A stretch of DNA of 64,000 nucleotides from Selaginella moellendorffii. Its lineage: Eukaryota > Plantae > Lycopodiophyta. How positions within the stretch are numbered: position 1 is the first letter of the stretch; each line of letters starts with the position of its first letter. The stretch covers positions 1,235,193 through 1,299,192 of the forward strand of contig NW_003314280.1 in the NCBI RefSeq assembly GCF_000143415.4, read 5' to 3'. Shown here piece by piece: positions 17,645 to 64,000 of the stretch. The position numbers and the translations under genes are program-made. Below the pieces are notes generated by a model. It saw nothing but the letters and a program-made list of their open reading frames with translations, was not told where the DNA came from and made no database searches.

Positions 17645-17646
17645 AC

Positions 17647-21642: not shown

Positions 21643-22379
21643 TGGTACCTGCAGCATCACCATGCCCATACTAGAAATTAGTAACCATACTAGTAACCTT
21701 ACTAGTATTATTTATTAATCCAATTAAATAATTGAAAGTTTATATATATAGACATGTTTAGAATTTATGGTAGAATAACCAGAATATACTACAAAGTGTT
21801 TATATTATAAACACGTTTATAAATTATAAATATAAAACTAATCTAAATAAATAACAACCTTTAAGTTTTAACAAAAACAAGAATGAAAACCTGAAAACTA
21901 GAAGTTCAACTAAAACCTTAAACTCATACTCCAAGAGCTACATAGGAACAAAAGCTTTTATTCCTTTCACAATTTAATTAAGACTTCAGTTAGCAGCTTA
22001 ATCCACTCTTGCCCACAGTGCAAGCACACTATACTCACTTGCTACTCACTGGATAACCTTGCTTGTTTTGCATATTGCCGCACTTAAATATGCTGTGTTA
22101 CCACATTGGCTCTACACTGTGCTCCATTGTTCTGCCTCTCCAACTCATGCAAAGCTCCACTTGTCATTCTTCTTTCTTCCCTAACTTCTTCTAATTTCAT
22201 TTCTTCTTGTAATGAACTCTTCCACTCCACGACTTGCCAACTCTTCAAATATTAAAAAAACAAAAGAAAATGCCATATCTTGACAATGTTTTATCACCGA
22301 CATCACCCCACCACTATACTTGGCCTTGAGGCACAAAAAAGGTTGTTCAAAGTATTTCTTCACACAATAACTATTCACT

Positions 22380-41960: not shown

Positions 41961-43312
41961 TGTCGCGAATGTGACTTCGGGTATTGAAAGTTACTTGTCA
42001 GCTAGTCCTTACAAACACTCTTTCCTTATTGCCACAATAGCAGGAAGTCGGTATTACTAAACCCTTTATCAGTCCCTCTTGTGCTAGTGGAGTTAACTGG
42101 GCATTTCGAGTGTCCTTAGATGAGACGAGCACAAGGACAGAATTCCTACATATTATTAGCTAAACATACTTAGCTCAGTAAGGAGTTCCCATCTCGTTGT
42201 GTTTTGCACTGGCTAGTGACAAGAATCCTCGCATATTGAGACTAGTCCCTCAATATTGCTAGATGATAGCTTACCATGTTTGCCAAACACCCTTGCTATT
42301 ATGCCTTTTGTATTAGTCTCATTCCAGTCCCAAATGCTATTTATAGAAAGTGTCTAGATTTACTCATTTGGCATATCTATGGAATGTAGAAATTATTTTG
42401 AACACAATGGTGTTTATCCTGTGTCCAAATTTGCAATCTAGGGACATTCCATATTTAGTAAGTTTCGAACTTGTCCTAGAGACTAACTCCTAGTACTAAG
42501 GGAGGCTTGGGGTGAAAGCCTAAAGCATGTGTTCCTCAAGGGGGAGTGAGGGCTATAGGGGGTTCTAAATATATAGTAGGGATAGTGGGTAGGTCAGGCA
42601 TGGTTGACCAACTTAAGGTATAGTTTAGCTCTCACTTACGTGTTTATTTTTGTTCTGCATTTGACTTGAGTCTAAACCCAAGTTCCATTCCATGCTAGCT
42701 AGTGGAATACCTATATCCTTGTGTTCGGCCACCAGTATGCTGAAATAGTGCCAGACTCTATTTGTCTCTGTTTTGCATGCTAGTCCTAGTATTGGGATGC
42801 TGAATGCTCTAGAACTATTCCAAGTCACTCTGTGCTCCTATCCCTTTGCTCCTTGGGTCGAGCGTTAGAGTGAAGGTTGGGAGCGATGGAGATGTGAGGA
42901 GAGACTGCACGGCGTTTAATCGGTAGTCTTCCATTTGAACATGGAGAGTGTGAGACTCTAGCTGTATACGCAGGAGTTGCTTCGTGGTCCAGTTTCCTTC
43001 GCTCCTCAGCTCCATGCTCGAGAGTTTGGCACCGTTCCTTCGTTTAGTGGCCCAAGGCCCTGAACCTCGAGTTCCACACCACTGTCTTATGGACACGTGG
43101 CATGTGACATGTGGCACATGGAGGGTTTAGGTTCTACTTCCGTGGTTATCCTATGGTAAATCACTATAGGATAAAGGGTAAAAAATAATGTACACTACAT
43201 TTGATATCAAAGGATACATCTCAACAAGTACTATCCAATGAGATTGGGCAACTAATCTCGTTGCATACGCAGAGATGAAAATGATGATCCAAGTGGGTAC
43301 ATGTTTGGGTGC
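41961..43312 (+). mobile_element. Element F: 5' LTR (41961-43199), degenerate PBS and ~110 bp of leader, interrupted by element E
   Basis: TG..CA LTR homologous to 44808-45943. The leader matches 45944-46056, then switches to a new LTR start. Confidence 0.88.
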
Positions 43313-43762
43313 TATTGCGAATGTTACTTTGGGTATTGAAAGTTACCTGTTGGGGGGATGGTCCAAAGTTGAGTTGAGCTCATGAGTTGAGCTCAATTCA
43401 GCTCAAGTCAATGCTAGTCAACATAGTCAACGATAAGTTTTATAAGGAAATATTAAGTCAGAAAAATGTTATTCTTTGGTGAACTTGAAATTTATGAGTT
43501 TAAGTATCAATGGTTCAGAGAGATTTTTATTTTTTGAATCTTTCTAATGTAGTTTATACAATTTCTAGAATTAGAAGTTCGTCTGAACCCATAGAAATTT
43601 TTGGGCTTTATTGGTCCCAAATAAAATGGGAATATTGAAGTTCGAATGAACTGGAAAATTTCTATTGTACATTTCAACATTTTAACATTTCAACAATTGA
43701 CCAGAAATATATAAATAATTCAAAACACTGATTCACTCGTTCATTCTTTAGGGTTTATAGAG

Positions 43763-43999
43763 ATGGGAAGCAAGGAAGACAAAAAATCTGTAAATAGTTC
43801 TAGCATACAGAATGTGAATTTTGTTTCACTACCACAATCTCCATATTACACGCCTGGTCCTTATTACCCATCCGGGAATGTGGAGACCACTGTCACTATT
43901 GATAAAAATGCTCTTGTTACTTCCGAAACAACAATCCAGAGCAAGAGAAAAGAAGAAATGGACAGCACAGCGGAAAGCACTAATAAATCCACTCTATAA
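43763..43999 (+). CDS. Small hypothetical ORF (78 aa) inside the MULE
   Basis: ATG-initiated ORF in AT-rich DNA with TATAAATA about 50 nt upstream; no recognised domain. Confidence 0.3.
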   Translation: MGSKEDKKSVNSSSIQNVNFVSLPQSPYYTPGPYYPSGNVETTVTIDKNALVTSETTIQSKRKEEMDSTAESTNKSTL

Positions 44000-44438
44000 A
44001 CCTTTCAATGGCTTTTGTAATCCACAAAAATATTATAAAAAAATGTAAATTTTTTATATATATCTTATTCCTTTTGATATGTTGGTCTTTGCAAAGATAT
44101 ATGATGTAGACAAATCAAAGAATTAAATCTATATATGATTTTGGGATTGAAAGGTAATCTTGCAAAAAGGCATACTCGCGTGCCTGTGTATATTCGCTAT
44201 TATTATATATGGCAGGCCAACTATATAAAATAAGGCTACATATTAATTATATGCTAGTTTTTAGCTTTTGAAACCCTATAGCCACTTGTTTCTCATAGTA
44301 GGTTGTAATTACTAAGACTGACAATTATCATTCACTATAGTGTCATGTCATAATAAAACATCATTCCCGAGATTGAAATATAGTATATTAATGAGAGAAT
44401 TCTTATTGCTAGGAAGTTTAATTCTTCTTGTGTGTTGC

Positions 44439-47400
44439 AATGGTTAGGAAGAAGTTTACTTTTGGTCCCGAAGGCCTCTCATATGAGTCTCCACCTCCAT
44501 CTCCAATCTCAACTAATAATCCACCTTCACCTCTACGCAACAATCCTCCTTTTTATTTTGAGGGTTATTGTGAGGCTCTTCCATTTGCGACCTCGAGTGC
44601 AACTGAACAAAAACTCCTTCCTTATGATGTTGTTAAAAAAGTTAGATTGCCTCCAATGCTTCAAGAGCGATGTCAATATTTTCTTCAAGATCTTGCTCCA
44701 GATATGGCAGGGGAGCTTAATGTAGATACATATTATCTTCAGTGTCCTATATGCAACTTTTATTTAAACAAGAGGGATGGTTGCATGGGTTTGGTAAATT
44801 GTATTGATGTCGCGAATGTGACTTCGGGTATCGAAAGTTACCTGTCGGCCAGTCCTTACGGACACTCTTACCTTACTGCCACGATGGCAGGAGGTCGGTA
44901 TTGCTGGACCCGTTATTAGTCTCTGCCTAAGCTAGTTGAGAAACTGGTCATCACATGTGCACTTAGACCGAAAGGGCACTAAGGAAGGAAATCCTAAGTT
45001 GTCATTTAGTCAAGCAGACTTGACACGGTGATGAGAAACTCATGATGTTGGCTTGCACTTGCTAGTGTTGGGAACCCCCACGATATTGAGCTTGGTCCCT
45101 CAATATCGCTAGATGATAGCTTACCGTGTTTGCCAAACACCCTCGCTATCATGCCCTTTGTGTTAGTTTCATTTCGGTCCCAAATACTATTTATGGAAAG
45201 TGTCTAGATTTGCTCATTTGGCATATCTACGGAATGTAGAGATCGGCCTGATCACAATGGTGCTCGTCCCATGTCCAAATTCGCAATCTAGGGACATTCC
45301 ATATTTAGTAAGTTTCGAGCTTGTCCCAGAGACTAACTCCTGGTACTAAGGGAGGCTTGGGGTGAAAGCCCAAAGCGTGTGTTCCTCAAGGGGGGGGGGG
45401 GCTATGGGGGGGTTCCAAATGTATAGTAGGGATAGTGGGTAGGTCGGGCATGGCTGACCAACCTGAGGCATAGTCTAGCTCCCGCTTGTGTGCCTGTCCT
45501 TGTTCTACGTCCGGTTTGGGTCTAAGCCCAAGTTCCATTCCATGCTAGCTGGTGGAGTACCCATATCCTCGCGTTAGGCCACCGGTATGCCGAAATAGCG
45601 CCAGACTCTGTTTGGCTCCATTTTGCGTGTTGGTTCTGGCATTGGGATGTTGGTTGCTCTAGGACTGTTCCAAGTCGCTCCGGGCACCTGTCCCTTCGCT
45701 CTTTGGGCTATATGCGGTTCGGTTCCATCACTCCTTGGCTCTATGCTTGGGAGTTTGGCACCGTTCGTTCGTTCAGTGGCCCAAGGCCCTGAACCTCGGG
45801 TTTCTATGGACACGTGGCATGGACATGTGGCATGTGAGACGTGGCATCTGTCACGTGGCACAAAGAGGGTTTAGGTTCTGCTTCGTGGTGTTATCCTATG
45901 GTAAATCACCATAGGATAAAGGGTCAAAACCACGTGCGCTACATTTGGTATCAGAGGATGAGTCTCAGCGAGTACTATTCAATGAGATTGGGCAACTAGT
46001 CTCGTTGCATACGCAGAGATGAAAATGATGATCCGAGTGGGTACACGTTTTGGTGCAAAGACTTCGCATTGGTTCCTTGGGATAGGTTTTGGTTACCTTT
46101 TTGTTCCATATTATGTGAGCTTGCTCTTGGGCTCATAAGAAGGATTGAGTTGTTCCAGTAGCATGAGTTTGCGCTTAGGCTCGTGAGTGAGGAAAATTGC
46201 AACTCGAGGTTACACTTTGAGTTGGCAGGATTAATGTTAGCCTATCGATGGTTCCATGAGTTGTTCCATGTACCATGGGTGAAAATAAACTTTCCCTGGG
46301 TTTGCTATGAGTGGCAAATAGGTTGGTCCATAGCTGTTTAGCACGGCACTAGTAGATCCTTCCTAGGCATGATTATAATTGGATCAATCAAGACTGTAGG
46401 GAACAGTCTATTGGTTCAAGTAATCATTGCCGTGCTCTCTCATAAACTTTTCTTCGATTGAACTGAAGGCAGTGTGAAAGCAAGCTTGAGGTTTGGTCAA
46501 AGATGAGACGAAAAGAGAGTCGGGGACGGAGGATCAAATACGTAAATCATTTTCTCTTCTTGGAGAGATGATTTGCAACGAGGTGTTAACTCATTGCTTG
46601 TGTTCACATTATGCAATCAAGAGTCCCTACCTTGATGCATGTTGGAAGTGATGGTCTTACAAGTGGTGAGTTATGGGATGGATAATGGTGAAACACTAAA
46701 CCATTTTATCTAAGCTCGCTATTGGAAGACTTGGGTTGCAATGCTCAATTCTTTTCCGGGGAACTTTGCTATTGCTCATTGAGTAGCTTGGTGTTGGATT
46801 AGTTTTGAGATTGGTCGGAAAGAGAGTGGCATGAGCTTGTCTGTGTTGTGAACAAAAGTTAGTGGTGTTGGGTGTCATAAACCTCTATTAGTGGAGTGTG
46901 GCATTTATGTTGCATTTTGGCGAATCGAGTTGGCATTTGATACTCACATAAACGTTTGAAGTAATGACATAGGCATTGCTCATTGCGTTACTCAATTAAT
47001 GATCAAATCATTGTGATATTTATATCATATCTATGTGATAATGAGCAATGTGTTTACTAAGTTGCTTGGTTAAATGATGATCAACCCCAAAGTGGTTGAT
47101 GGAGAAACTAGTCTACTTGCACGAAGTAGCATTGTAGTAGCTTTGACTGGATTCTCTATAGCGGTCCATTATGCTAAGCTTAAGTTGGTACCTTGTTTCC
47201 TTAAGTTTGCTCACTAAGGTGTTAAAAAAGGGTTGTAGCATTCATTTGCTATAGCTTGTCGGTTGATCCGTTAGCACTTGGAGTAGATTGTTGGATGGAA
47301 AAGATGTGGAGTTGGGGCATTGACGTCACTAACACTTGTGTTAGTGGAAGTGGCATTGTTATTTTAAGTGATGAGGAATTTTCCTTGGACCTTGATTTTT

Positions 47401-50400
47401 CCATGTCATTTTTCTTGTTAGTGTTTTGGCTTCACATTGGATCTTGAAGGTGATTGAAGAAGAGTGTTAGTGCAATATGGATATCCGAAAATGTGGTCTT
47501 CGTGATCAAGCCTTGGATGTTCATTTTGCACTTTGCAGATGTCGATGTTGGATATCGGTTAGATGGGCAAAGATGTTCGAGGCTTAAGCATATTATGGGT
47601 CATGAGAATTGGTGTTGAAGTGAACCTATGTGAAGTTGTTGGTAGGAAGAAGTTGGTTGAGTCTTGAAAGTTTGCAATCCTGGACTGAGAATCATTCTTT
47701 CTCTAGGATGGGAAATTTTCCACAAATTTTCTTAGACTTTTCCAATGGCTGATCTATTAATCATTTTGTCCGAAAACCATTCTGTTTTCGAAGGCTAGTA
47801 CAAACTAGTGAAGGGGTTGGAGTTGACTTCGGTTAACTTAGACCTTGGTAGGTAGTTTGTATGATGCAACCTGAAAGGGATGTTGACTTTTGGGGCTAAA
47901 GCAATTGAGTTGGATAGAGTCTAGAGTTAGTGTAGAAAAGTGGCCGTAGCACTTTTCTAAGAAGGGTGACTCTTGTGCCTTTCTTTTGTAGCATTATGCT
48001 CGGTGGCAGGTTGCACCTTGCATTTCGCTAAGACTCTATGAGAGTAATGAGCTCTCACTGATCTTGACTTAGTCTTGGTAGCCCTGCACCTTGGCTGAGG
48101 ATGGTGATGTCCAACTTAGTTGTTTGAGGTTGAGATGTTGGTACCCATACTATAGCTTTGTCTATGAGGAGGTTGTGTACCGATATGAGTCCATCTTATG
48201 GTCTTCACTTTAGTTTCGACTGAGTGTTGATTGCATAGCTAACCTCTTCAAAGCATGCTCAGAGATAGTGGCTAAATGTTTTAGTGAGCTTATTGCGGTT
48301 GAGTTGGATTTGAGTGGTCATTTAGTTTGTGCATGTCTATGAACTTTTATCTCGTACCTGGGGTATCACGTTCATATTGGGCAAGTATATAACTTGATGA
48401 CAAGAGTTGGTGTTTGGGTCTTGTGAAGGCAAGTTGAGGAGTGATTGTTAGTTGCTTTGTGACTAGTGATTACTTGTAGACTTCGTCAAGGACCGTTGAC
48501 ACTTGCTTTGCTCGATGATGATTTAGCAGTGATGGGCTTGCTTTACCGGATAGTGTTGCGGAGGATCGTGTCATTAGGCTGGCATGGTTTTTCCATGTTG
48601 GCATGTCAATTCCTTTGTCGATATCATTTGGTTACGTTTGGTTTATAGTGTTGGATTTCATTGAGTCTTGGATGTGGTGATTCACTCTTTGATGAAATGT
48701 TATCTGTAACTGAGTATTGCTGAAGGATTGGTCTCGGATACTAAGTATAGTATCTTCGACTTTTGTTAACTTGGTTGCTGGAAAGCTCCGAGTGGTGATT
48801 CACTCTTGCTTTCTTCTAGCTTTGTCCTAATGTTGATGGCATTGAAGTGATGCCTTGTCATTGATATTGTTGATATTGAGATCTGAGTGAAATGAGATAT
48901 CCTTCCAAGGATTGATATTGAGTTTCATTAGTCTTGATGAATATAGTGTTGATGATTTGGCTATAGCTTTGTGTTGTTGGCATTCGTGCATTTGCTAGTT
49001 AGCAACTGTATTGACGTTCAAATGAACTGAGTGGCAAGTTTGAGTTAGTTGTGTTCTAGATGAGATTGTTTCGTAGGGGTTGAGCTTTAGCTTTTCCTTG
49101 AAAAATGATTTAGTCGTGAACTATGCTAACTTCACGAGAGGAAGAATTAGTGTTCAATATTAAACAATTTGAGTCCCTATTGGATTTGAGTTGGACTATA
49201 TCTATCATTGATGATTCTTCTTGTGCTTGTTATGAAGTGAATTACGTCTTGCTATAGATGGATTCATAGAGGATCGTTTGATGATCATTTGTTAAGCATA
49301 GCTTCGTTATGCTTAGCTTTTGGATTGATGCAGACATGCTCTTCATTAGCTTTAGCATTATGAAGTTTGGCTTATGGATGTGTTAAGGAAGATATTGTGA
49401 GTTGCATCACGTTTTCTTCTTTAGCATTGAAGTTAGTTTCTATGAGACTCATGATCATTATTACACAAGACTTAGCTATAGGCTTCTTTGAACTTTTGGT
49501 TCCTTGAGTTTTCATGCTCATTGTTCCATTTGTTAGAAGTTGTTGGGGAAGGCATTTTGGCTCATTAGCTTCGATGTTGAAGTTGGCTTTGCATCTAGCA
49601 ATCATTGGTGATGATTGACTATCATCTAGGGTAGTTGATTGTCCTTATCACAAGTTTTGCTTGATTATTGTTGGTTTGGAATTATTTGCTATTCTTCGGG
49701 ATGGTACATTCTTTCTTCAATGATGATTATACATCACTACATTGATGGGTTAATTGACGATCTTTCATGATAGTTGGTTATTCTCTTTGATGGCTTTTGG
49801 CTTTTCGCAATACCACATGTTCTTTGTGGTTTGCTCTGGATTGGTCTCTTGGGTTTGAGACGTCAGTAGGATGTTGCTGACACTTGCTTAGGCAACTTGA
49901 GTTCCTTGGTATTGTTGGCTGGGATCTATTCAGATTGGCTTTTGTGATAGTTGGCAAGCATGAGTGTTTGTTGGTCTTACCACATTCATTCTCTTCTGTT
50001 GATTGTTGCTCGAGTTAGTTTTGATAGATTTGGATGTTATTTCCTTTGGGTGATACATTCGCGAGCATTGTGCTTGTTAGTCAATGATACTTTGTGTTCT
50101 TTGAGTTATCTCTAGTAAGTTGTTGGCTTACTGTCTGCTATCTTCGGTAGTTAAGTTTTATCATTGAGTTTACTTGATGATATACTTGCTATTGAATTTT
50201 GTTGGATGGTGAATCCTATGTTTTCCAATGATAGTGATCTTAGTGGTTCCTATACTGTAATACTAGTTTATCAGATGATAACATACTTGGAATACTTGTG
50301 TGTTCTAATATAAGATTTATTCACTGATAATTCCGACTCTAAGATATCATTGTCTATGACTTTGATATTGTCCATCTATTGATCTTTGAGTTTGGGCCAG

Positions 50401-52202
50401 TAATAGGCAGGCTAGCTTCGGCACTTTGTGTGCATGTTGAAATCTCTAGTCATGGGGTAGCTACTGTTGACTGGTCACATAACCCGCCTCTCTGTCGATG
50501 TTCCTTATTCCGTTGAAAGGGCGTGACCGTGTAAACAACTCTAACTGCCTGTTTACAGTAGTCTATCTAAACCTTACCAACGGGTTTGGTTTCTTTGCTT
50601 AGGAGGGTTGGGGCCTCTGGCTTCTCTCTCTATGTTCCTACGGGCAGGGGCATATCACACTTTTGTAGCTGGGTGACCCCCAGAGCAGTAAGGGTGGCTG
50701 ACTTCGTTGGTCATTTCCTTGTTGGCGACGGCCGGAAGGTGTCTGAGCTGGTAGCGCATCCGCGTTAGACAAAGAGGTTGCCTCCTAACTCATTTAAGTT
50801 GGTGCATTTCTCACATAGTGTGAGTACCATGAACTTTTTATGGAGTTGTTTCTTTGGCGGTATTCTAGATTTGAGTATGCATCGACGAGGACGTCAATCT
50901 TCCTAAGGGGGGGAGAGTGTCGCGAATGTGACTTCGGGTATCAAAAGTTACCTGTCGGCCAGTCCTTATGGACACTCTTACCTTACTGCCACGATGGCAG
51001 GAGGTCGGTATTGCTGGACCCGTTATTAGTCTCCGCCTAAGCTAGTTGAGAAACTGGTCATCACATGTGCACTTAGACCGGAAGGGCACTAAGGAAGGAA
51101 ATCCTAAGTTGTCATTTAGTCAAGCAGACTTGACACGGTGATGAGAAACTCATGATGTTGGCTTGCACTTGCTAGTGTTGGGAACCCCTGTGATATTGAG
51201 CTTGGTCCCTCAATATCGCTAGATGATAGCTTACCGTGTCTGCCAAACACCCTCGCTATTATGCCCTTTGTGTTAGTCTCATTTCGGTCCCAAATACTAT
51301 TTATGGAAAGTGTCTAGATTTGCTCATTTGGCATATCTACGGAATGTAGAGATCGGCCTGATCACAATGGTGTTCGTCCCATGTCCAAATTCGCAATCTA
51401 GGGACATTCCATATTTAGTAAGTTTCGAGCTTGTCCCAGAGACTAACTCCTGGTACTAAGGGAGGCTTGGGGTGAAAGCCCAAAGCGTGTGTTCCTCAAG
51501 GGGGGGGGGCTATGGGGGGGTTCCAAATGTATAGTAGGGATAGTGGGTAGGTTGGGCATGGCCGACCAACCTGAGGCATAGTCTAGCTCCCGCTTGCGTG
51601 CCTGTCCTTGTTCTACGTCCGGCTTGGGTCTAAGCCCAAGTTCCATTCCATGCTAGCTGGTGGAGTACCCATGTCCTCGCGTTAGGCCACCGGTATGCCA
51701 AAATAGCGCCAGACTCTGTTTGGCTCCGTTTTGCGTGCTGGTTCTGGCATTGGGATGTTGGTTGCTCTAGGACTGTTCCAAGTCGCTCCGGGCCCCTGTC
51801 CCTTCGCTCTTTGGGCTATATGCGGTTCGGTTCCATCACTCCTTGGCTCTATGCTTGGGAGTTTGGCACCATTCGTTCGTTCAGTGGCCCAAGGCCCTGA
51901 ACCTCGGGTTTCTATGTACACGTGGCACGGACACGTGGCATCTGTCACGTGGCACAAAGAGGGTTTAGGTTCCGCTTCGTGGTGTTATCCTATGGTAAAT
52001 CACCATAGGATAAAAGGTCAAAACCACGTGCGCTACAATTAAGCATTGTCGCAAATGCCCAAGAGCGGGTTTGGAAGGTGTGCACACGTGGATGTATAAG
52101 AAAATCAAGAAAAAATTAAAAATACACAGCTATTATGATTTCATGGTGGAAAACAATATTCCATTAGTGAACACTGCATCAATAAGTATCAATAAGTGCT
52201 GA
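44439..52202 (+). pseudogene. MULE cargo ORF with a CxxC...HxxxC zinc-finger-like motif, interrupted by element D (44439-44807 joined to 52043-52202)
   Basis: Removing D and one TSD gives an open frame: ...LQCPICNFYLNKRDGCMGLVNCI(K/E)HCRKCPRAGLEGVHTWMYKKIKKKL...INKC*. Confidence 0.65.
44808..52037 (+). mobile_element. Non-autonomous LTR element D (LARD-like)
   Basis: Near-identical LTRs 44808-45943 and 50918-52037; PBS TGGTATCAGAG at 45946; PPT about 50905-50917; TSD ATTGA/ATTAA. ~5-kb interior has no ORF over about 80 aa. Confidence 0.92.
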
Positions 52203-52640
52203 ATATGGGATATTTAGGTCACCCTTTAATGTAATGTGAAAGTCATGCATAGTTTTTTCAAAAGGTTAATTCTTTATGAGTAAAGTGGAGAATCTTATAT
52301 TTTCGAGAATGATATTATTCTAGCATGTATAAAGATATTATTATATATACAAGTGGTTATGACACTGTTATAATTTTGAAGTCCCATTTTTGAGACTGAC
52401 AATTTAAACTTTCAAGAACCCCTAGATCTTTTCTTANNNNNNNNNNNNNNNNNNNNNNNNNNNNNNNNNNNNNNNNNNNNNNNNNNNNNNNNNNNNNNNN
52501 NNNNNNNNNNNNNNNNNNNNNNNNNNNNNNNNNNNNATTATACATCCCCCCCCCCCCAAGCCCCCCTTTCTACTTTTTTTTATTAACAAAATTGTATTAC
52601 CTATAGATAATAAACTGATAATACTAGTAATTATGAAATT

Positions 52641-52770
52641 TGACAGACTGACACTGTAACTTTGTCATCTTTGACACTGACACTGTCTCTGTCACTGACA
52701 CTATCACTGTCGCTATCTGCTACACTGACACTGTCAGTGTCACAATCATTATCACATTGACATGTGACAC
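52641..52770. repeat. Array of TGACAC/GTGTCA-like hexamers
   Basis: More than 10 degenerate copies in both orientations (tgacactgacactgtctctgtcactgacac...). Confidence 0.7.
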
Positions 52771-52971
52771 ATCTTTCTCATTGCATTCAATTGTCTTTTA
52801 ATGTATCATTAATAAATAGATTTTTCATACCACTCCTCAATTTACACATTGCATATGATGTGCCATGCATACCTAGGAAAACTTCTAGAAAACTAAATAT
52901 ATATTATTTATAAGTTTTTAAAACATCATAAATTACCTCCTAGAAGCAACTGATAGAGAAGGATGAAAACC

Positions 52972-55900
52972 TCAAAGACGGCGTTTGAAGAACTTATATT
53001 CTTCAATCGCAAACACCGATCTACCAGAGTCATGTGCTACTTCTACCATCGAACCACTACCTGCTGTGCAATTGATGACAACACCCCTAGTTGGGCAATA
53101 AAGCTCAAGTAGGACATGCATCGTCGATGGAGATCGGAACCGATACCCAGACAATGTGTTACGGATGTCGTTGTCTATGAGATTTGGTATGATGTCAGTA
53201 AAGTTATCATACCCTGGCAAAACCCTTGCAGCACGCTCGCTATCATGAAAACCGTCATTTTCTTTTCTGCAAAACACATGGTAGGTCCACATCATAACCT
53301 GAATAATAAAACTTTAGAGACAACCAAAACAGAAAATGATTTCTTACCTTCTCTGGCATGCTTAGGACACCTTTGGTCTCCCCAACACTATCCATGATGC
53401 ATCCGGAAGAGAACCTCTTGAAGTTGACTCGACTTGCATACCTCATAAGGCAGGACATCCAATGGGGGTCATTCGGGAGAATGAAGGCAACTTGACCGGT
53501 TGTATGAAGGAGAATTGCTGCAAAAAGGAATGCATCCTTCAAGTGGTTTTTAGTCAGGTTGTTCCAGCTTGGGACATCATCATTAGCGTTTAGAAGACCA
53601 TCTGGCATGTCAAAGAGCATGAAGTTTGTGCTCTTGAGCGGTCGCTTATGGATCTTCTGACAAAAGCGCTCCCACTTTTGCCGGATCGCCATATTCTCAG
53701 CATCCTCCTCAAAAGATGCCATCAATGAACTATAGGAGCCAATAAAGATCCCAATTTCACTACAGCATGCCACTAGAGATACAGGGCGAATCTAGGGGGA
53801 GAAGACAAAGATAAGATGTGAACTTAAGAAAAATTTACATACCGTCATGTGGCGTGTGGTAGATGTAAGTTCCTCCAAGTCCTCTTCTCGAGCATCAAGA
53901 CGAGCTGGAATGAAGTTACTCCCGACAGTTTTTGCTGCAACCATTTTGAGGAACTAAGAAAAGGAGAGAATTAAAAGAAATATACCTCGAGAAGTTCCTC
54001 GGTTACGGGGACGTCTTGGACGATCATCATCACTGTTGACTAATTCCTCCAGATGTGGATTTGCTCGCTTTCATCGAGGTAGAACTTCTTTGACGTTCTG
54101 GTTCTCTTGCTCGACTTCATCTCGAAGAATCTCGTTCTCACCGCCATCTTCACTCTGCTCGCCATTGGCACCAATAGGGTCGACATTCTCATGGCCATCA
54201 TCTTCGTCATCATTGTTGCCTCTTGCAGCCTCATGGTGGGTTGGTTCATAATCTGGCATCTCCAATTCCCAAGGACAAGCGTGCTTTATTGCTGCTGGAA
54301 ACTTCATTGTTGTCGAGTACATGCCTCCATCTCTCACACCATGCCTCAGGAGGCGTGTGCATACCGGTGTTTCGAGAGGAACACCTCTATATAATAGAAT
54401 ATAAACAATTGAGTATAGTTGAGAAATTGTATATTACCTAAAAGCCGCTCGACGCATGAAGTAAGGTTGGCCAAGTTGTTTATCAAATGGAGTCGTGCTT
54501 GTGGCCTTCTTTGGCAGCCAGTCCTCTCCAAGTTTTGTAAGCTCAATGGTGACAAAGTCCTTAAATGGAAGTTGCTCAGGATCATCCCCTATGAAAGGCG
54601 CTAGAAACATCTCCCCTTCATATACAGTTTGTGAAATGTAGACGGTTCTCCTCATCACAGTCTCCATCATACTATCCAAACCTTTTTCTCCTTCACTGAG
54701 TCTGCTATTAAGGTCGTTCAGAATGTGTATCTGTTCCTCATATGTAAGCTTTGACTTTGAGATGTTGTAAATAATCTCATCTGGAGTCTTGCCCACTAAA
54801 AAATAACTTTTGTGAGAACCTTCATGTAAATACAAACAATACTTACTTTCATGACAAGCAATCTCTATTATAATATCGAACCACTCCTTTGGGCATCAAG
54901 GATCAGCCACACTAAGTAATTTCTTTACCTTTGTCTTCTTTGTGCTGTTGATTTCTTGTCAATTGCAGCTAAATGCTCTAAGAGTTCTTGATCATTTTCA
55001 GCTCGATGCAACTGTGCATATGCATCTTGCTTAACCTTCACCAATGGCTGAAGACAACACAAACATTCTATGATAAGAAGTATACTTAAAAGAACATACC
55101 TTACTCCACACAGCTGTCATAAAAGCCATTGGATTCTTGTACCATCTATTGGCATCCTGACGACCTTGTTGATGTCGAATAAGTGATGCTAAATCATCAC
55201 CATAGTGGCTGCGGACTGCATCCTCGTCGAGATTGGCAAGAAACAGGATCTGCTCGATATCATGTATTAGGCTTTGTTTCTGCACTGCAAACTGTCCCAG
55301 TCTGCAAAACACAAATTGTTAAAAGTGATTGAAGAGGGAGAGGTACTTATGCATTAATTTTGTGGCAAGCTATCACAAGCCTTGCCACATCTAGAGATCC
55401 TCTCGCATGTACATGTCCAACCGGAACATTGATGTGATAGACAGGATCGTCTCGGAAGCATTCTCGGATGCACTTCATCCACGCGCACCAGCGATAATTC
55501 CCGTCAATAATGTAGAACATTTTCCCCACAAATTGTTGAGTCTCAGGATGGCTCATAAGCTTGTTGTCCAATTCGCGGGACTTCATTTTCCAAATGTCAT
55601 CCCAATCCCTCTCGATTTCCGGTGACACCGAGAGGGTATTTGTCGTTCCTGGCTTGAAAACCGAAACAAGGAACATACCTATGTTTGTCCCAAGGCCATT
55701 CTGTTTGTACAGACTATAGATGTCCATGTTGACGAAGTGCGGTGAAGCAGACCGAACGATGCTTGTCTGAGTGAATCGACATAGTGGGATTTCTCGGATC
55801 ATGTGCCCCGGGCCTTCCCACTTGAGAGACTCCAGAGTCGTGTGAATGGCCTTCTCTTTAGTTCTCAAAACTGTCTCTTGGAAGCGCTTGTCGACAATGT

Positions 55901-56027
55901 GTTCAGGTAGCTCCACTTCTCTTTCAGCTTCAGCTACACCTCCAGTAGCACCATTATCAGATCTAGCCCCTGACTCGGGCCCAACACCGCCATCAGGCGC
56001 ACTTGGGCACTGCTCCGTTTCTGCCAT
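52972..56027 (-). pseudogene. Multi-exon ParB-like domain + N6-adenine/N4-cytosine DNA methyltransferase (beta-order motifs); MULE cargo, disrupted in this copy
   Basis: ParB/Srx-like FYIIDGNYRWCAW (55491-55511). Motif IV-like MLFDMPDGL (53600-53611) precedes motif X-I-II RSPSTMHVLLELYCPTRGVVINCTAGSGSMVEVAHDSGRSVFAIEE (about 53000-53140). Short introns, e.g. 53347-53299; several stops and one GT>AT donor. Confidence 0.78.
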
Positions 56028-56084
56028 ATTTTATGAATATGTTAAGAGTAGTGGCATTTGTGGTTGTGGCAGCAATGGTAGTGA

Positions 56085-56312
56085 TGACAATGGTTGTGCT
56101 GGTGGTGGTGATGATGGTGGCGGTGGTGGTGGTAATGGTGGTGATGACGGTGGTGGTGGTAATGGTGGTGATGATAGTGGTGGTGGTAATGGTGGTGATG
56201 ACGGTGGTGGTAATGGTGGTGATGATGGTAAAGGTGGCGGTGGCGGTAATGGTGGTGGTGGTGGTGGCGGTGGTAATGGTGGTGGTGGCATCGATGGCGG
56301 TGGTGGGGGTGC
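56085..56312. repeat. (GGT/GAT/AAT)n trinucleotide tract; poly-Pro on the minus strand, in frame with the ParB exon apart from one TAA
   Basis: ORF 56031-56486 shares its frame with ORF 55347-56027; only TAA AAT separates them. Confidence 0.8.
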
Positions 56313-56519
56313 ATGTGGACTGGAGCTATGTGGTTGGGAAGACGGTAGAATTGTCGCTGTGGAAATCTCTATCTGAAGGTCAACTTGATTGTCGTCCTGG
56401 ATCTCATCTTCCTCATGTCTTCTCTTTGATCCAACATCCCTCTCCTTTTGTAGTTGCTTCCATTTCTGAAAATAAAAAAAACTCATTATAAATTATAAAT
56501 GCATAAGAAGAGGGGAACA

Positions 56520-56878
56520 GGGCGTGGGCTCAGTGCAGGCCTCCCCCAAGCACCTTGGCTGGCCCGCGCCAAGGCCAACTGCCCGAGAACCTTGCCTTGG
56601 CGCTTGGAGGCGAGCCGGTTCACTGGCGAACTGGCCCTCCTCCAAGCACCAAGGCCGGCTCGCGGGCGGTTGGCCGTTGCACTTGGACTTAGCTGGCTCG
56701 CGCCAAATGCCTAGCGTGGGCATTTGCCACAAGCACTTGGCGCCTTTGCCGGCCAAGCACCTTGGCCGGCCTAGGCGGAGTGCCCAGCCAAATGCCCGGC
56801 CTGGGCACTTGGCAGCAGTGGTGCTGGGCAGCAGTGGCCCTAGACAACGCGGCGCTGGCGTGGCGTGGCGTGGCGTGG
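56520..56878. repeat. GC-rich tract of CTTGGC/GCCAAG motifs between the divergent MULE genes
   Basis: Many short palindromic units such as gccaagcaccttggc; abuts an assembly gap. Confidence 0.6.
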
Positions 56879-58013
56879 NNNNNNNNNNNNNNNNNNNNNN
56901 NNNNNNNNNNNNNNNNNNNNNNNNNNNNNNNNNNNNNNNNNNNNNNNNNNNNNNNNNNNNNNNNNNNNNNNNNNNNNNNNNNNNNNNNNNNNNNNNNNNN
57001 NNNNNNNNNNNNNNNNNNNNNNNNNNCGCGGAGGAGAGGGAGTGGAGGAGAGGGAGTGGAGGAGGAGAAAAAACTTACTCTTGGCGGCATTCTGTTCCCA
57101 CAGTCACTCCCAATCTCCCACGATACTTTCTGTAAAACCCTAATGCCGGTGGCTGCCCTAACCCTAACCTAACTTTCATCACAGCCGTTCATCATGGATG
57201 CAGTAAATCTTCACTGTACAATAAATAATAATAAATCTAGCATTGTACAATTTATACTCCGCCCTAGATTTGATCACGTGACAAAGTCCTTTTGAATTGT
57301 AATTTAATAATGGAGGTGTGCTCTAATATGACTATATCATAATGTGAAATAATGTCACAAATGCATGTGTTGAATTGATCACAGTACAAAATTGTTAGAA
57401 AATATAAGATTATTAAATCGTAAGGTGTTATTTCCAAAGCAATGTATATAGATAATTTACTATAGGTGATAGATGGTAGTACAAAGATGGAATATATTTA
57501 AATGAGTTCAGAAGAATGTGATGATTTCTAGCTTTAATGAAGTACTGAAAATATGTACAATATTTAATTTATTTGGCAACAATTGGTTGATGGTAGATCC
57601 TAGAATAAAATCATTCCTATCTTTCATATTATGGCACATGCTTGAGGTGATATTTCTTTCCGTTCGACCAAAAGTTAGTGCATATAATAAATTTGAGTAT
57701 GGTTTTGAATTCAATGTATATAGACTTTTAATATTGTACAACATAGTCCTATATACTTTATACAGAATTTATTATAACAACATTATTCGATGTTAGATCC
57801 TAGAATAAAATCACCCTATCTTTTCACATAATGGCATAGCACATGTGAGGTGACATTTCGTTATAAAAGTTTAGAGTTCCAAAACCTAAAGGCAACAAAA
57901 TGGAGGGCTTCCTTTTGCATTACCAAGATCACCCACCGCTTTCTATCTCCTAGAGTCTTATTTCAGAAAGTTTTCTTTGCCGACGTTTCAATCTTTCTCT
58001 CGGTTCTATTTCA

Positions 58014-61000
58014 TTGGAAGCTGTGATTCGCAACAACATTGGTGTAGTTGAACGATCGGAGTTTCTTCTTTCGGGTGTAGGTGAAGGTGGACAACATTGG
58101 GATTTGCAACATTCCAAGTCGAAAGAGATTCGAGTTTTTGGATCTCCAATCAAAGTGCGAGGCTGTGATCCTGCTAAAGTGAATGTGAAGCAAGAGTTGG
58201 TCGTTTTCATTTCTTCCTCTTCTAGTTCTAGTGGAGATGTTAGTCCAGTGTGAGCCAAGAATTTCCAAACTCCAACTTCACTGATATTCCAAGCTGTTTG
58301 CAATGCTTTCTAGTTTTCCCGCCTCTCTATCAATGTTCGTTCCTTTCTGCATAGGCCTGTTAGCGAGCTCCCATCTACATACAATGGCAATATCTTCTTT
58401 GAACTACCACCTCTTGTCAACTCAAAACGAAAGGGGATGGAGACGAAGCAGGATGTCCACAACTGATGCAAGATCAAGACCACACATTTCCAGCATTTCA
58501 AAGGCATAGTGTCCATGGTTCATTGTGGTGGGTATTTGGATTGTGTGAATAAAGCATGCAATCAAGAGCACGGTAAAAACTCCATATTTTTTGAAGGATC
58601 TGCAACCAATCCTCCCCTCTATGACACCATTGGTGTTGGATTCAAGTGTCGGTTTTGCAAGAATGCTCCATTGTGTCGTGCCATCTGTGGGGCCAAGATG
58701 TACTATTTTCTTCCACGGGATGGAGAGGTTGGTAGAGCTGCAGTACATATTGGCACGCACACACATCCAATGCAGGAAGGGATACAAAGGAGTTCAGTCA
58801 ACCATTTCAAAGATGTAGTGCAGATAGAGACTGTGAGAAACTCATCTGCAACTCCGAAGCATGTTCAAAAGATAATGCTCAAGGATTTTATCGCAAATAC
58901 TTTACTTGATCCGGACTACAAGAATACTCAACTGGATGAGGCTAGCTTGTGGGAGTTACTACGACATGTGCAACCTGCAACTAGCCTCAGGAGGTATGAA
59001 AATATTATTACATACTTTTCAATAATATCTCTCTTACATTTTGTTTTATTTAGGATAAAGTCTTGGATGTGTGAATCTCGACAGGGGAAACTCCAATAAA
59101 AAATTGACTCAATCCTTGAACTAAAATGGACTTGTCCCTATGAGTTTATCCATGGGAGTTTATTTCCAGATCAAGTCATTAGTGAGCAAGAGCACCCCTT
59201 CGTTTTCAAAATGTCTACCATGGGCCCTGCCTCTGGTGTGGATCTTGTTTCCCAAATGGATATGTCTGGGTCGAGTGACCTTGCTAATGCATGGGTACAT
59301 TTTGACCATATGGAGCGGGTGGCAGGTTAGACAACCATGGGAGCTCATGTGTATGATCCAAGGTAGTTTTTTTTCTCATTATCTTAAAATGGTTTTAAAC
59401 ATTGCATGCTTTATTTCGTTAAAGTGGGACTTATTCAGTAAAGTGGGACATTAATTAGCATGTGTCCACATGCCATTTCCTAGTACTTAATTAATATTTA
59501 TTAATATTTCTATCAGTTTTTTAATTTATTTTTTTATATTTCACAATATTATAACACAAAATCATATGAAAAGTTTTTAATTTATAAATTATAAAGTTAA
59601 AACTTCAATTTTTTATTGTTGTTATAAAAATGGCATGTGGCCACACACCATAAGTGGGATAATGAAAAGTCCCACTTTAACGAAATAAAGCATTTGCACT
59701 TTTCACAGGCTACGTTGTAACTTGACAATTGCAACGGCAGAGTTTAAAGTACAAGACCAGATGGCTCAAGAAATATTTTGGAAGTCCCTCTCCGACATTG
59801 TATTGAAGCGGACTGGTAAGCCTGCCAACTTTCGCGGTTTCATGGCAGATGGGGCTGGGGCTAATTGGAATGGTGTCCGGGCAGTCTTTGGGAATGGTCT
59901 ACCCCTAGAAGGTCGTGAGAGGACTTGTGAGTTCCATTGGGCTCAGAGCCTAAACCAACACTGCCACCTTATCAAGCCAGATTTCCAATTAGCATTTAAG
60001 GAGTTGTGCAAACAATGGCAGGCTGCACCTTCTGAAGAAGAGCATGAGGCAAAAGCAAACGAGATCCAAATGTGGTGGCGTGAAGATGGCCATACTGACG
60101 TAAGTTGTCTACCACAACTTGAGTCGTGGTTGGGGTGGTGGGAAGTTAGAATGTTCCAATGGGGACATCACTCTTTTCAGGTTGGTTTTTCTTTTTTTCC
60201 TCTCTTTTTATTGCTTTTTAATATCATCTTTTTATAAGGATCAACCACTTGAGGATCTTGCATACACCCCAACTGTGAATCTCTCAGAGAGTAAGCATTG
60301 GAGCTGGCGTTCCTCTAAGGCAGGGAAAGGGAAGATGAGTCTATATGAAGCATGTCTATCAGATTTGATACGCGCTGTAGAGCGGTCTTCAAAAGCCTTG
60401 GCATTTGAGGAAGGAAGATATATGGGAACAGGACCTTCGGTTGAGATGTTACACGATCGGATGAAGAAGAAAGTGACTCCACTAGCACGAACAATGGCAA
60501 CTGCAGTGGAGGAAGTGGTCCGCGGCACATCTATGGAGTACACTCCTCGGGCTTCTATTGGTGATATGAAGACCGTCCGCTCAAAGCGTCGATTTTCCTT
60601 TGCTGGTGAAGATGTTGGCACGGATCTTGGAGCAAAAAGCTCTCACAGGCCTGATGTTGAGTATCATTCTACTCCAAGACATCGCCCCAGAACCGAACCA
60701 CCTCAAGTGGCTGATGAAGAAAGTGCATCACAGTAGGTTGAAATTGCTTATTGTAGTGTGGAGCCGAAGCAATGGGCAATCCATCGAGTGCTAGCGAAAT
60801 CAAATGTAAGGTGTGTGGGGATGCTTCCAAGGGGCAAGTGTTGGGCTTGGATCCGTGGTAATAAGTCTGTTTCTGTTCCAGCGCCATGTTTCCATGGGGA
60901 ACGAAAGCAAGCAGGATTTTCAAGATGGTGTTGGTTATATTGCTGCAACTCTGATGTCAACCATACAAAGCGGCTTGAAGACACTATAGTGACTAAACCT

Positions 61001-61516
61001 AATGCAGTACCTAAAGAATGGCCGGTTGCTAATGGGGTTGCGCTCACCTCGGATGAAATTGAAAACCTTGAGAAATCTGGTTTCAATCTTGAGAGGAGAG
61101 TTGGAGATATGAGTGACAGAACCAAGACTATTCCTACAGAGATGCACAGGAGGCTAACATGAAAAGGTAAGGCAGTTAAATTTATTGGTACCGTCTCCAA
61201 GCAGAAGCAAGGTAAAATAAACTTGGCTCAAACACTTGAGTGTGAGATTCTCTCCACGAAGTACATCACTGCGCTCGCAAAGGAGTACACAGTCAAAACA
61301 GAAGGTGGAGAGTACACAATTGCCATTCAAGACTTTCCTTCTTGCACATGTCCAGACTTTACGAAGCGCGAGGAACATGGGAAGGCATATGCTCCTTGTA
61401 AGCATATGTACTACATCTTCATCAACATCTTGCACCAGGATCCTAAAGTGGATATTCATATACACCAAACAAGCCTTACTATTGCTGAGTTGCAGAAAAC
61501 TTTTGGAGCTAATTAG
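58014..61516 (+). pseudogene. Mutator-family transposase with GCM/WRKY-like Zn domain, DDE core and C-terminal SWIM finger; intron-containing, several stops
   Basis: CGGYLDC..C..CRFC..C..C..HIGTHTHP; VHFDH, FMADGAGANW, CEFHW (MULE CxxH), TVNLSESKH; SWIM SCTCPDF...PCKHMYY. Confidence 0.85.
59406..59693. mobile_element. MITE in a transposase intron
   Basis: 27-bp perfect TIR atgctttatttcgttaaagtgggactt, an inner inverted repeat (ccacatgccattt), AT-rich core, flanked by TTGC on both sides. Confidence 0.85.
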
Positions 61517-64000
61517 ATTTTCCAGCACTATCGATGTTTATTCTCTATCAATAATATAAACTAATTATACCTTATATAATTAATAAAAATATTTTATTAT
61601 TTCACTTTTCATTTCATATACTTGTGAGGTTCTTTTCGCAATACTACCCATAGTATTTGTGAGTCTCCATTTTTGTCTTTACCTTCTCAAAAAATATTTC
61701 GTGATAGTCTTTTGGGTGTATGATGTTACAATGTATTGTGAGAGCATATGTACCATCACAGTTGTTTTTTTTTCCTTTCAAATAGTTATATGGCCTTATA
61801 TAGAATCTTAATTCAAATTTAATAATTTAAAAATTCTTACAAACCTGACATTTACTAGCTAGAAAGCACAGAGTACAAATTTAAAGAAGTGACAAGAATA
61901 CTCTTTTTGCAAACATTTTATTTTATATTCTAACAAACGTCTCTATTATTGCATGTAGTAAATATTTAACTTATTATAACAAGAAGTGTCCTTTAGAACA
62001 TTTTTATCTATATAATATATAGAGAGTTATGAAATTATTAAGTTCGCCATAACTTTAAAATTTTAAAGTTTATAATGTTTGTACTAAATTACAATTGAAA
62101 ATTGAGCTCAACTCGTGAGCTCAACTCTTCAGCTCGTGAGCTCAAGTATGGTCCACGCTCCCTGTTGGCTAGTCCTTTTAGATATTCTTTCCTTACTGCC
62201 ATGACAGTAGGAGGTTAGTATTGTTGGACCCGTTATTAATTTCCACTTGAGCTAGTTAAGAAACTAGTTAATGAACATGCACTTAAATTGGATAAATATA
62301 AGGTAGGAACCCTATGTGTTTCTTGCTGAGCATACTCGGCCTGGTTTGAGAAACTTGTGTCATTAGCTTGCACTTATTAGTATCAAGAACCCCCTGCAAT
62401 ATTAAGATTAATCCCTCAATATTGCTAGTTGATAACTTACCGTGTTTGCTAAACACCCTCACTATCATGCCTTTTGTGTTAGTCTCATTTTGGTCCTAAA
62501 TACTATTTATGGAAAGTGTCTAGATTTCCTTATTTAGCATATCTATGGAATGTAGAGATTGTTCGGAACACAATGGTGTTCGTCTCATGTCCAAATTCAC
62601 AATCTATGGACATTCTATATTTAGTAAGTTTCAAGCTTGTCCCAAAGACTAACTCTTGATACTAAAGGAGGCTTGGGTGAAAGCCCAAAGCATGTGTTCC
62701 TAAAGGGGGGGGGGGGGTCTATGGGGGATTCCAAATGTATAGTAGGGATAATGGGTAGGTTGGCTAGCATGGCTGACCAACTTGAGGCATAGTTTAACTC
62801 CCGCTTACGTGCCTATCCTTGTTCTGCATTCGGCTTGGGTGTAAGCCCAAGCTCCACACCATGCTAGCTCCCATATCCTTGCGTTAGGCCACTAGTATGT
62901 TGAAATAGTGCCAAACTCCATTTTGCTCCATTTTATGTGTTGGTTCTAGCATTGGGATACTAGATGCTCTAATACTATTCCAAGTCGCTCCGTGCTCTTG
63001 TCCCTTTGCTCCTTGGGCTGTATGCTCAGGAGTCATTCCATGCTCTAGTGCCATCACTCCTTGGCTCCATACTTGGGAGTTTGGCACTGTTCCTTCGTTC
63101 AGTGGCCTAAGGCCTTGAAACTCGGGTTCCACACCACTGTCCTTTGGACACGTGGCATATAAACACTTTGTGGTTAAATCTTGGTGACGCCAACGTGGCA
63201 AAAGGTTTTGATTTGATGGTAAACCACCATAGGATAAAGTGTGAAAACCGCGTGTGTTATATTTGGTATCAAAGGTAAAGTCTCAACAAGTCCTATTCAA
63301 TGAGATTGGGCAATTGGTCTTATTGCATACGCAGAGATGAAAATGATGATTCGAGTAGGTACACGTTTGGGTGCAAGGGCTTCACATTCGTTCCCTAGGG
63401 ATGGATTTTGGTTACCTATTATGTGAGCTTGCTCTTGGGCTTATAAGATGGATAGGGATGTTCCATTTTGCACGAGTTTATGCTTGGGCTAATAGTGAGA
63501 TACATTAGCAACTCAAGGTTACACTTTGAGTTGGCAGGATTAACGTTAGGCTATCAATAGTTCCATGCTATGAGTGGCAAATAGGTTGGTCCATAGCTAT
63601 TTAGCATGGCACTAATGGATCCTTCCTAGGCATGATTATAAGTGGATCAATCAAGACTATAGGGATTAGTCTATTAGTTCAAGTAGTCATTGCCGTGCTC
63701 TTTCATATACTTTTCTTGGATTGGACTGAAGGCAGTGCGAAAGCAAGCTTGAGGTTTTGTCAAATTAGAGACTGAAAAGAGAGTTGTTAGGGACGAATGA
63801 TCAAATATGTAAATCATTTTCTCTTCTTGGAGAGATGATCTTCAATGAGGTGTTTAATCATTGCTCGTGTTCATAGTATGCAATCAAAAGTCCTTATCTT
63901 GATGCATGTTGGAAATGATAGTCTTACAAATGGTGAGTTGTGGGATGGATAGCAGTGAAGTGTTAAATTGTTTTTGTCTAAGCTTGCTATGGAAGACTTG

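Follow-up and report, generated by a model that had tools for sequence, protein, structure and literature searches.

The element considered here lies in a 64,000-nt stretch of the Selaginella moellendorffii genome (contig NW_003314280.1, positions 1,235,193–1,299,192; hereafter the window, to which all coordinates refer unless another sequence is named), where positions 43354–62160 constitute a single insertion of 18.8 kb, including a nested long terminal repeat (LTR) element, with approximately 11.6 kb of its own sequence. Two genes are arranged head to head within one unit bounded by terminal inverted repeats (TIRs) and a target-site duplication (TSD): a transposase gene on the + strand and, on the − strand, an accessory gene that joins a ParB/sulfiredoxin (Srx)-like N-terminus to a C-terminus resembling the beta-class amino-methyltransferases (amino-MTases). 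The insertion is probably a defunct member of a family of DNA transposons of non-seed land plants that carry two genes and move by cut and paste, and its anatomy and the claims made at the family level are advanced with high confidence.

The view that a single TIR- and TSD-bounded element holds both genes, put forward in the original prediction from the sequence of the window, was confirmed by the TSD, the TIRs and an empty site. The 8-bp TSD CCTGTTGG is present at 43346–43353 on the left and at 62161–62168 on the right, and the empty site is found in two paralogous LTR copies (44841–44848 and 50951–50958), which read through as ...GTTACCTGTCGGCCAGTCC.... Since CCTGTTGG flanks the element on both sides and the paralogous LTR copies are uninterrupted at this position, the transposon inserted into an LTR with generation of an 8-bp TSD; the outer flanks of the insertion join up as one LTR-like repeat. 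The TIRs are imperfect and approximately 45–60 bp long and share a core of 28 nt with 96 % complementarity, as judged by a repeat scan and alignment of the ends. On the accessory-gene side, the left TIR (43354–43415, + strand) contains two TGAGCTCA units and, after them, short repeats of the AGTCAA type, while the right TIR on the transposase side (62100–62160, − strand) contains three such units. The 64-kb window holds seven TGAGCTCA units against 1.6 expected (none of 100 shuffles reached seven), five of which sit in the two termini.

The accessory gene was confirmed as the predicted divergent, spliced gene at 52972–56027 (− strand), with its ATG at 56027 and its stop codon at 52972–52974, and all of the motifs originally quoted for it are present. 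In the window it is a pseudogene that comprises the ParB/Srx-like N-terminus, a weakly conserved middle and the C-terminal beta-class amino-MTase-like domain. Exon 1 (55351–56027, − strand) encodes the ParB/Srx-fold domain and includes IPLCRF (55773–55790) and IIDGNYR (55491–55511). The latter had been likened to the ParB/Srx signature IIDGxHR, which overstates the match: it is a mutated form of the DGNHR motif of the family, with Y in place of a near-invariant H. The strand and loop equivalent to motif IV, VPSWN and motifs V–VIII are encoded by the exon at 53348–53773 (− strand; FDMPDG, 53597–53614), whereas the last exon (52972–53298, − strand), which is 51 % identical to its counterpart in a second S. 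moellendorffii element (L002; loci and proteins are referred to by L and P numbers), encodes motif X, the S-adenosylmethionine (SAM)-binding motif I and then the stop, with RSPSTMHVLLELY at 53098–53136, VVINCTAGSGS at 53050–53082 and SVFAIEE at 52999–53019. Four short introns of 49–52 nt were placed, with GT–AG borders except in the first, whose donor is AT; at this site GT is found in L003, a paralogue from S. moellendorffii, and the next GT in the window comes after an in-frame TAA. No clean splicing was obtained for the middle region (approximately 54930–53800), where the frames do not match and where a candidate intron of 32 nt and two TGA codons in frame (54071–54073 and 54896–54898, − strand) are located. 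The introns indicate long residence in eukaryotes and the copy is decayed, both in agreement with the original prediction.

The remnants of the transposase gene extend over approximately 57888–61516 (+ strand), with a conserved 5′ exon at 57888–58145 and a zinc-finger-like, Cys/His-rich region at approximately 58509–58770. Motifs of the DDE type, namely WVHFDH (from 59292), FMADGAG (from 59839), CEFH (from 59926) and NLSESKH (from 60278), were read by eye on the same strand, and a SWIM-like CxC...CxH finger forms the C-terminus (61343–61405, + strand). An in-frame stop lies directly after ...ERVAG (59327), where the proteins of the liverwort Riccia sorocarpa have W, and the gene is also disrupted by several frame breaks and by a miniature inverted-repeat transposable element (MITE). 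Because of the broken splice donor, the premature stops, the nested LTR element and the MITE, the window copy is dead and inert, with both of its genes broken.

The affiliation of the transposase proved more difficult to establish. The element had been described as Mutator-like, which was confirmed by no profile: among 18 transposase sequences (scans covering pieces of the window, open reading frames (ORFs) of L001 and L002, and eight annotated Riccia proteins), no match to MULE, Transposase_mut, DBD_Tnp_Mut, FAR1 or IS256 was found in Pfam or NCBIfam at E values up to 5. Splicing is inconsistent among the transposase proteins annotated in Riccia. The SWIM profile of Pfam was matched with 19.1 bits, just under the cutoff of 19.6 (E=9e-4), and the ZSWIM1-3 RNaseH-like profile matched weakly (E=0.18). 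The DDE core was compared with that of Mutator-like elements (MULEs), in which a C/D(2)H motif is accompanied by a D–D spacing of approximately 65 and a D–E spacing of approximately 110, the motifs and spacing of the present sequence being judged by eye. TSDs of 8 bp are also generated by hAT and Zisupton elements; affiliation with either was weighed on the basis of the TSD, with no evidence found for or against it. The 8-bp TSD is shorter than the 9–11 bp usual for MULEs, and the TIRs are long; some MULE groups have TSDs of 8 bp or 8–10 bp (table in PMC6446971). Taken together, the borderline SWIM match, the weak ZSWIM match, the DDE and C(2)H motifs read by eye and the long TIRs render the Mutator-like label plausible but unproven.

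The C-terminal domain of the accessory protein is a true homologue of the permuted beta-class (PF01555-type) amino-MTases. In the decayed window copy, the last exon matches N6_N4_Mtase (PF01555) of Pfam with 15.3 bits against a gathering score of 26.7 (E=0.02) and PHROG 3008 with E=6e-4, while the scanned Riccia copies reach 23.7–26.2 bits against the same gathering score (E=5e-5 to 9e-6), and a PF01555 match is on record for four Riccia proteins. The best sequence matches of the protein are PHROG families of phage DNA MTases, which match the C-terminal domain down to E=4e-9. When compared with the PDB, the family profile retrieved beta-class enzymes only (M1.HpyAVI/DpnA, CcrM, RsrI and the Adineta N4CMT), and a Foldseek search with the low-confidence MTase model returned CcrM (E=4.8e-12), M1.HpyAVI, M.BceJIV, M.MboIIA, M.PvuII, the rotifer N4CMT and M.RsrI over 210–260 columns. 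As seen from the alignment and the secondary structure of the model, the motif order is permuted, with strand 4 and motif IV first and motif X and the SAM-binding motif I (FxGxG) last; beyond motif I and strand 2, 10–40 residues remain before the C-terminus, in the window as in L002 and Riccia. Motif I is retained across the family alignment, and a strand ending in D, followed by a loop, occupies the position of motif IV in both the alignment and the model; the motif reads DMPD in the window and NLPD in L002. The prediction of an MTase C-terminus was thus borne out as regards permuted beta-class homology (Pfam, PHROG, PDB profile and Foldseek), whereas FDMPDG, which had been equated with the DPPY motif, is not such a motif. 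Single-sequence searches with exon pieces against Pfam, NCBIfam, PHROGs and the PDB yielded sub-threshold matches only for the MTase part and none for the ParB part, and the 172-aa motif-IV exon retrieved nothing when used as the query of a word-based protein search. A PDB phmmer match to polyubiquitin was rejected as an artefact of summed repeats, as was Marchantia MpDN4MT1 as a relative, that protein being a different, canonical enzyme with a TSPPY motif.

For the N-terminal domain, an exhaustive HMMER search with exon 1 of the window as the query identified 105 relatives, none of which belongs to a named family. Where a species name is attached, they derive from S. moellendorffii, from Riccia sorocarpa or from one of two ferns, Adiantum capillus-veneris and A. 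nelumboides; all others stem from assemblies or metagenomes. Of the 105 relatives, 30 were traced to their source, 14 to three plants and 16 to assemblies or metagenomes of Logan, ENA or JGI, and among these no bacterial or phage source for the ParB part was encountered. The domain is characterized by the signature PLCR ... W ... DGNHR..AW, in which DGNHR is nearly invariant. An AlphaFold (AF2) model of the window's own N-terminal domain, built with 30 relatives, attained a predicted local distance difference test score (pLDDT) of 92.3 and a predicted template modelling score (pTM) of 0.86. With the exception of one stray, the top 42 Foldseek matches of this model in the PDB are members of the ParB/Srx superfamily, among them ParB, KorB, Noc, sulfiredoxin, SbnI, the serine kinase SerK and PadC (best E=5e-3, probability 1.0). 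On the strength of this model, the N-terminal domain is assigned the ParB/Srx fold with its conserved phosphate-binding motif of the G-x-x-R type. A ParB-like exon, 27–68 % identical to the query, was also observed in 69 JGI metagenome contigs (L013–L081; Ga0116226-31, Ga0181522-37, Ga0209208, Ga0209611 and others), which are mostly AT-rich, intron-bearing and decayed and presumably represent host-plant DNA in environmental samples.

The association of the two genes is not confined to the window. In L002, the same head-to-head pair is found, with identities to the window of 41–59 % for the transposase, 42 % for the ParB part and 32–51 % for the MTase part, and the pair is enclosed by termini alignable with those of the window, including the TGAGCTCA units; the intergenic length in the window (1.86 kb, one assembly gap included) is similar to that in L002. 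In Riccia, all five loci examined (L001 and L005–L008, of which the last four were picked through C-terminal MTase fragments alone and the first is the locus of protein P0108) have a complete accessory gene and carry a transposase gene upstream on the other strand, although these copies differ by 20–60 % in protein sequence, and the Riccia annotation includes seven neighbouring locus-tag pairs of the two genes. The two-gene arrangement is repeated in the metagenomic contigs L052 and L065, and the MTase part was detected downstream of the ParB exon in other metagenomic contigs by tblastn (L045, L062 and L076–L078) or by hidden Markov model (HMM) searches (L072–L075 and L045). Most of the long loci among the 69 metagenomic ones display decayed ParB exons with no partner detected by an MTase HMM that is insensitive on intron-split ORFs. 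The accessory proteins are approximately 900–1200 aa long, and the fern relatives are known from the accessory protein alone. In P0108 (1207 aa), which is full length, the ParB-like N-terminus and the PF01555-type MTase are united in one protein. At 4146–13843 of its locus L001 (CM100801.1, 27409598–27433440), all exons of both genes are free of stop codons, and this copy, judged by its reading frames, is a candidate for an intact, possibly autonomous element. The UniRef names attached to Riccia proteins P0106, P0108, P0109, P0128–P0130, P0146 and P0154 (for example 'Trimethylguanosine synthase', 'Profilin' or 'Leishmanolysin-like peptidase') look like automatic mis-annotations of transposon genes.

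The accessory gene is under purifying selection. The ratio of nonsynonymous to synonymous substitution rates (dN/dS) is 0.10–0.12 in all three parts of the gene between L001 and L005, the least diverged Riccia pair and the only one to give a proper value, since dS is saturated in every other Riccia pair; this is far from the value of 1 that had been named as evidence against the original prediction. In the other pairs, the proportion of synonymous differences (pS) is saturated at 0.73–0.91 and that of nonsynonymous differences (pN) is 0.26–0.39, the gene being slightly less constrained than the transposase. The pairing of the two genes is a conserved family trait under selection, and no Pack-MULE capture. 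That a host ParB-MTase gene was captured once in the Pack-MULE style, or that two unrelated elements are merely nested, could be argued from the existence of single-gene copies (L003 and L004, both of which are fragments without a transposase). Such an explanation is hardly credible in view of the same orientation and spacing in two Selaginella subfamilies, all five Riccia loci and two metagenomic contigs, the parallel divergence of both genes, their enclosure by a single pair of TIRs both in the window and in L002, the low dN/dS and the presence of the multicopy family on many chromosomes. A search for co-occurrence across relatives had been suggested as a check on one-off capture, which its outcome contradicts.

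The elements also carry repeat arrays that may represent binding sites. In the five Riccia loci, 71 palindromes of 19 bp and of the CCGGCGG-N-CCGCCGG type were found, of which 68 are located in the flanks or the intergenic region and three inside genes, and they are nearly absent elsewhere in these loci of 21–24 kb. Each of the five elements has clusters between its two genes and beyond at least one gene end, with both ends occupied in four of the five; in L006, no palindromes were found beyond the accessory gene. The TIR/TSD ends of the Riccia elements were searched for and could not be resolved, only palindrome-rich subterminal regions being obtained. In the Selaginella elements, the termini are marked by the TGAGCTCA and AGTCAA-type units, and short tandem and inverted GACACTGACACTGTC repeats are located at 52638–52755 in the window, approximately 220 bp downstream of the accessory stop codon.

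These features may be combined as follows. The first gene probably encodes a transposase of the DDE type, with a zinc-finger region at its N-terminus and a SWIM finger at its C-terminus, and the second, transcribed divergently from the shared intergenic region, encodes a protein with a ParB/Srx N-terminus, a variable middle of 400–600 aa and an MTase-like C-terminus. The accessory protein would bind the repeats of its own element through ParB-like loading and would methylate nearby element DNA, producing N6-methyladenine (6mA) or N4-methylcytosine (4mC), or at least use SAM there. The mark would then favour expression or transposition of the element, either by opposing host silencing through 5-methylcytosine (5mC) or by gating the access of the transposase, and Dam methylation is known to gate the transposition of IS10 and Tn5. 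Self-marking by the accessory protein is proposed tentatively and may well prove wrong. Still more doubtful is the specific form in which intact members such as Riccia L001 would load through the ParB-like domain on the palindrome arrays of their own ends and promoter, would deposit 6mA or 4mC there and would thereby be shielded from 5mC and RNA-directed DNA methylation or licensed for transposition; this we consider rather unlikely on the basis of the sequences. Several observations weigh against self-marking. The MTase model is of low confidence (pLDDT 48.8, pTM 0.53), and across 13 distinct variants the motif-IV tetrapeptide is D-[LMIVF]-[PS]-[STEDFI] and never (D/N/S)PP(Y/F/W), with an aromatic residue absent from 12 of the 13 (the exception being DVPF in Adiantum P0033). 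The N-terminal domain and its 30 relatives have no sequence match in Pfam, NCBIfam, PHROG or the PDB, the best being phrog_1033 at E=0.2, so that of the predicted ParB-like N-terminus the fold has stood (AF2 and Foldseek) and a ParB sequence-profile match has not; no helix-turn-helix was identified, and DNA binding by this domain is assumed. The partner gene is lacking in several copies (L003, L004 and many metagenomic loci), though these look decayed, and the repeats may serve the transposase instead, subterminal repeats being ordinary transposase sites.

Catalysis by the accessory protein is uncertain because motif IV is D-hydrophobic-P-x rather than DPPY, and the aromatic residue of this motif, which stacks on the flipped base, is also missing in inactive paralogues such as METTL14. 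The MTase-like domain might consequently be catalytically dead and, together with the ParB-like domain, serve as a SAM- or DNA-binding architectural partner of the transposase, which might pair the ends, choose the target or repress the promoter in the manner of MURB/MutB-type second ORFs or of KorB/ParB clamps. Such a role, which we regard as the main rival to self-marking yet on the whole as rather unlikely, would account for the absence of the aromatic residue and for the replacement of P by S in some variants of motif IV; it agrees with the matching of MTase profiles to the motif X–I half only and with the resemblance of the palindrome clusters in the divergent promoter to KorB/ParB operators, while strong purifying selection is compatible with any function. 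On the other hand, motif I is conserved, as is the acidic residue that follows strand 2; the near-invariance of the D and P in the loop suggests that the active site has kept its shape, and the whole catalytic fold of 250 aa has been preserved from liverwort to lycophyte. An active MTase might also act in trans, on host chromatin at large, RNA or protein, with no self-marking involved. Its specificity is unreadable from the sequence, the unusual motif IV could reflect another substrate, and PF01555 enzymes have repeatedly switched between 6mA and 4mC (PMC8885841); nevertheless, the known PF01555 relatives are DNA enzymes, and local action is favoured by the ParB-like domain fused to the MTase and by the arrays of element-specific repeats beside the gene, so that action in trans appears improbable.

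Self-marking by a transposon-encoded protein of this kind has been proposed before, for a brown alga. In Ectocarpus, the transposon Sola1-1_Ec32 encodes a ParB-like/DNA-MTase protein of 1104 aa opposite its transposase, and its authors propose binding and epigenetic modification of its own element (PMC12477816). Both are large DNA transposons with an accessory gene opposite the transposase, and Riccia P0108 (1207 aa) has the same domain order; they differ in the host and in the transposase, which is of the Sola1 type in the alga and SWIM-type and MULE-like here, the comparison being one of descriptions and not of sequences. The state of motif IV and selection are known only for the land-plant family. 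In the Bostrychia genome paper (Petroll et al. 2025; bioRxiv 10.1101/2025.02.11.637652), two Plavaka-associated genes of red algae were described, PAG2 as combining PF01555 with a SET domain and PAG3 as combining a ParB-like domain with a 2-oxoglutarate (2OG) oxygenase; PAG genes are carried by Plavaka, Zisupton, Fanzor and Chondrus Mutator elements, and self-binding and self-modification were proposed for them. Resemblances to the present family include the PF01555 domain of PAG2, the ParB-like N-terminus of PAG3, the tandem inverted-repeat arrays beside PAG3 and the movement of the genes between transposable element superfamilies; moreover, the best HHpred match of PAG3, 7BNR, is also among the Foldseek matches of the ParB domain of the window. 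However, the PAG domains reside in two proteins with other partners, in contrast to the one fused protein found here, and their carriers are EnSpm/Plavaka, Zisupton or Fanzor elements.

The two folds are also united, in the same order and with a permuted MTase, in phage and prophage ParB-MTases (PF02195 and PF01555; ParB-Tls loci, PMC4738411), from which the plant proteins differ by an inter-domain insert of 400–600 aa, introns, the DGNHR motif and the absence of DPPY. These ParB-MTases are the probable ultimate source of the plant genes. Like VANC of the Arabidopsis VANDAL/Hiun MULEs, the predicted protein would be a transposon-encoded accessory factor that recognizes short repeats of its own element and alters their epigenetic state, but VANC has neither an MTase nor a ParB fold, causes loss of 5mC and shows no homology. 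Mobile elements with a DNA-modification enzyme of prokaryotic type are further exemplified by retrotransposons that encode DNA MTases (DNMT, PMC5890265; Dam-type, bioRxiv 10.64898/2026.05.21.726589) and by the TET/JBP genes of KDZ and Plavaka elements (PMC12730594); unlike the present protein, these are a C5-MTase, an alpha-class Dam and a dioxygenase, respectively, occur mostly in retroelements or fungal hosts and have no ParB-like domain.

Such a gene is not mentioned for plant transposons in a 2019 survey of MULE diversity (PMC6446971) or in a review of eukaryotic adenine methylases (PMC4738411), and the PF01555 enzyme of rotifers was said to have no eukaryotic homologues (PMC8885841). A full-text literature search for this type of accessory gene returned the Ectocarpus and Bostrychia papers only and none for land plants. 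The system had been put forward as undescribed, which holds for land plants as far as reports were found and fails for algae, since a ParB-like/DNA-MTase accessory gene has been published for Ectocarpus and related ones for red and green algae. As far as could be found, the novelty lies in the family of land plants and its SWIM-type partner, in the analysis of selection, in the departure of motif IV from the canonical form and in the arrangement of the palindromes in three clusters.

Transposons with their own DNA-modification enzyme are rare and known mainly from retroelements, fungi and algae, and the algal ParB-like/MTase accessory genes were reported in 2025 as brief notes, without functional work. 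With a related two-gene unit maintained by purifying selection in elements of a liverwort and a lycophyte, and with relatives of the accessory protein in ferns, the phenomenon now reaches into the land plants, and the interest lies in the family and its predicted function, the window copy itself being an inert fossil. The apparently intact Riccia copy and the candidate repeats open the self-marking hypothesis to testing in cultivable plants accessible to methylation-aware long-read sequencing, and the conserved non-canonical motif could inform the chemistry of amino-MTases or the study of pseudo-enzymes. If self-marking were true, land plants would harbour a transposon-encoded epigenetic system, complete in itself, of the 'write your own mark' kind, whose amino-MTase works without the canonical DPPY.

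Further features of the window include two later insertions into the transposon. The nested LTR retroelement (44805–52040, 7.2 kb) stands outside the two-gene system; its LTRs (44805–46056 and 50915–52040), 1.1–1.25 kb in length, are 97–98 % identical, and its interior has no long ORF. The target of the transposon belongs to the same LTR family as this nested element (42510–43353 and 62161–63000+, 77–88 % identical). The 295-bp MITE within the transposase gene (59401–59695) has perfect 27-nt TIRs and is 98.6 % identical to positions 2110–2404 of S. moellendorffii L003. Two assembly gaps fall within the element: one (52437–52536) lies 436 nt 3′ of the accessory-gene stop, outside the exons, and the other (56879–57026) between the two genes in the divergent promoter region, 852 nt upstream of the accessory ATG and approximately 860 nt before the first recognizable transposase exon; neither is crossed by an exon or reading frame. 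At the left end, approximately 1.4 kb (43416–44804) has no counterpart in L002 and includes a 125-aa open frame (44428–44804, + strand) that is interrupted by the LTR insertion and has no Pfam match. Just upstream of the accessory ATG, positions 56031–56486 form a GGN/CCN-rich tract with a 9–15-nt periodicity that is Pro/Gly/His-rich in all frames. The window consists mostly of nested repeats and has repeats in common, at a nucleotide identity of 80–98.6 %, with two S. moellendorffii loci, which, like the MITE, points to an origin from this species or a very close relative; the retroelement sequences at 15009–18020 and 21880–23704 are 80–90 % identical to the flanks of L002.

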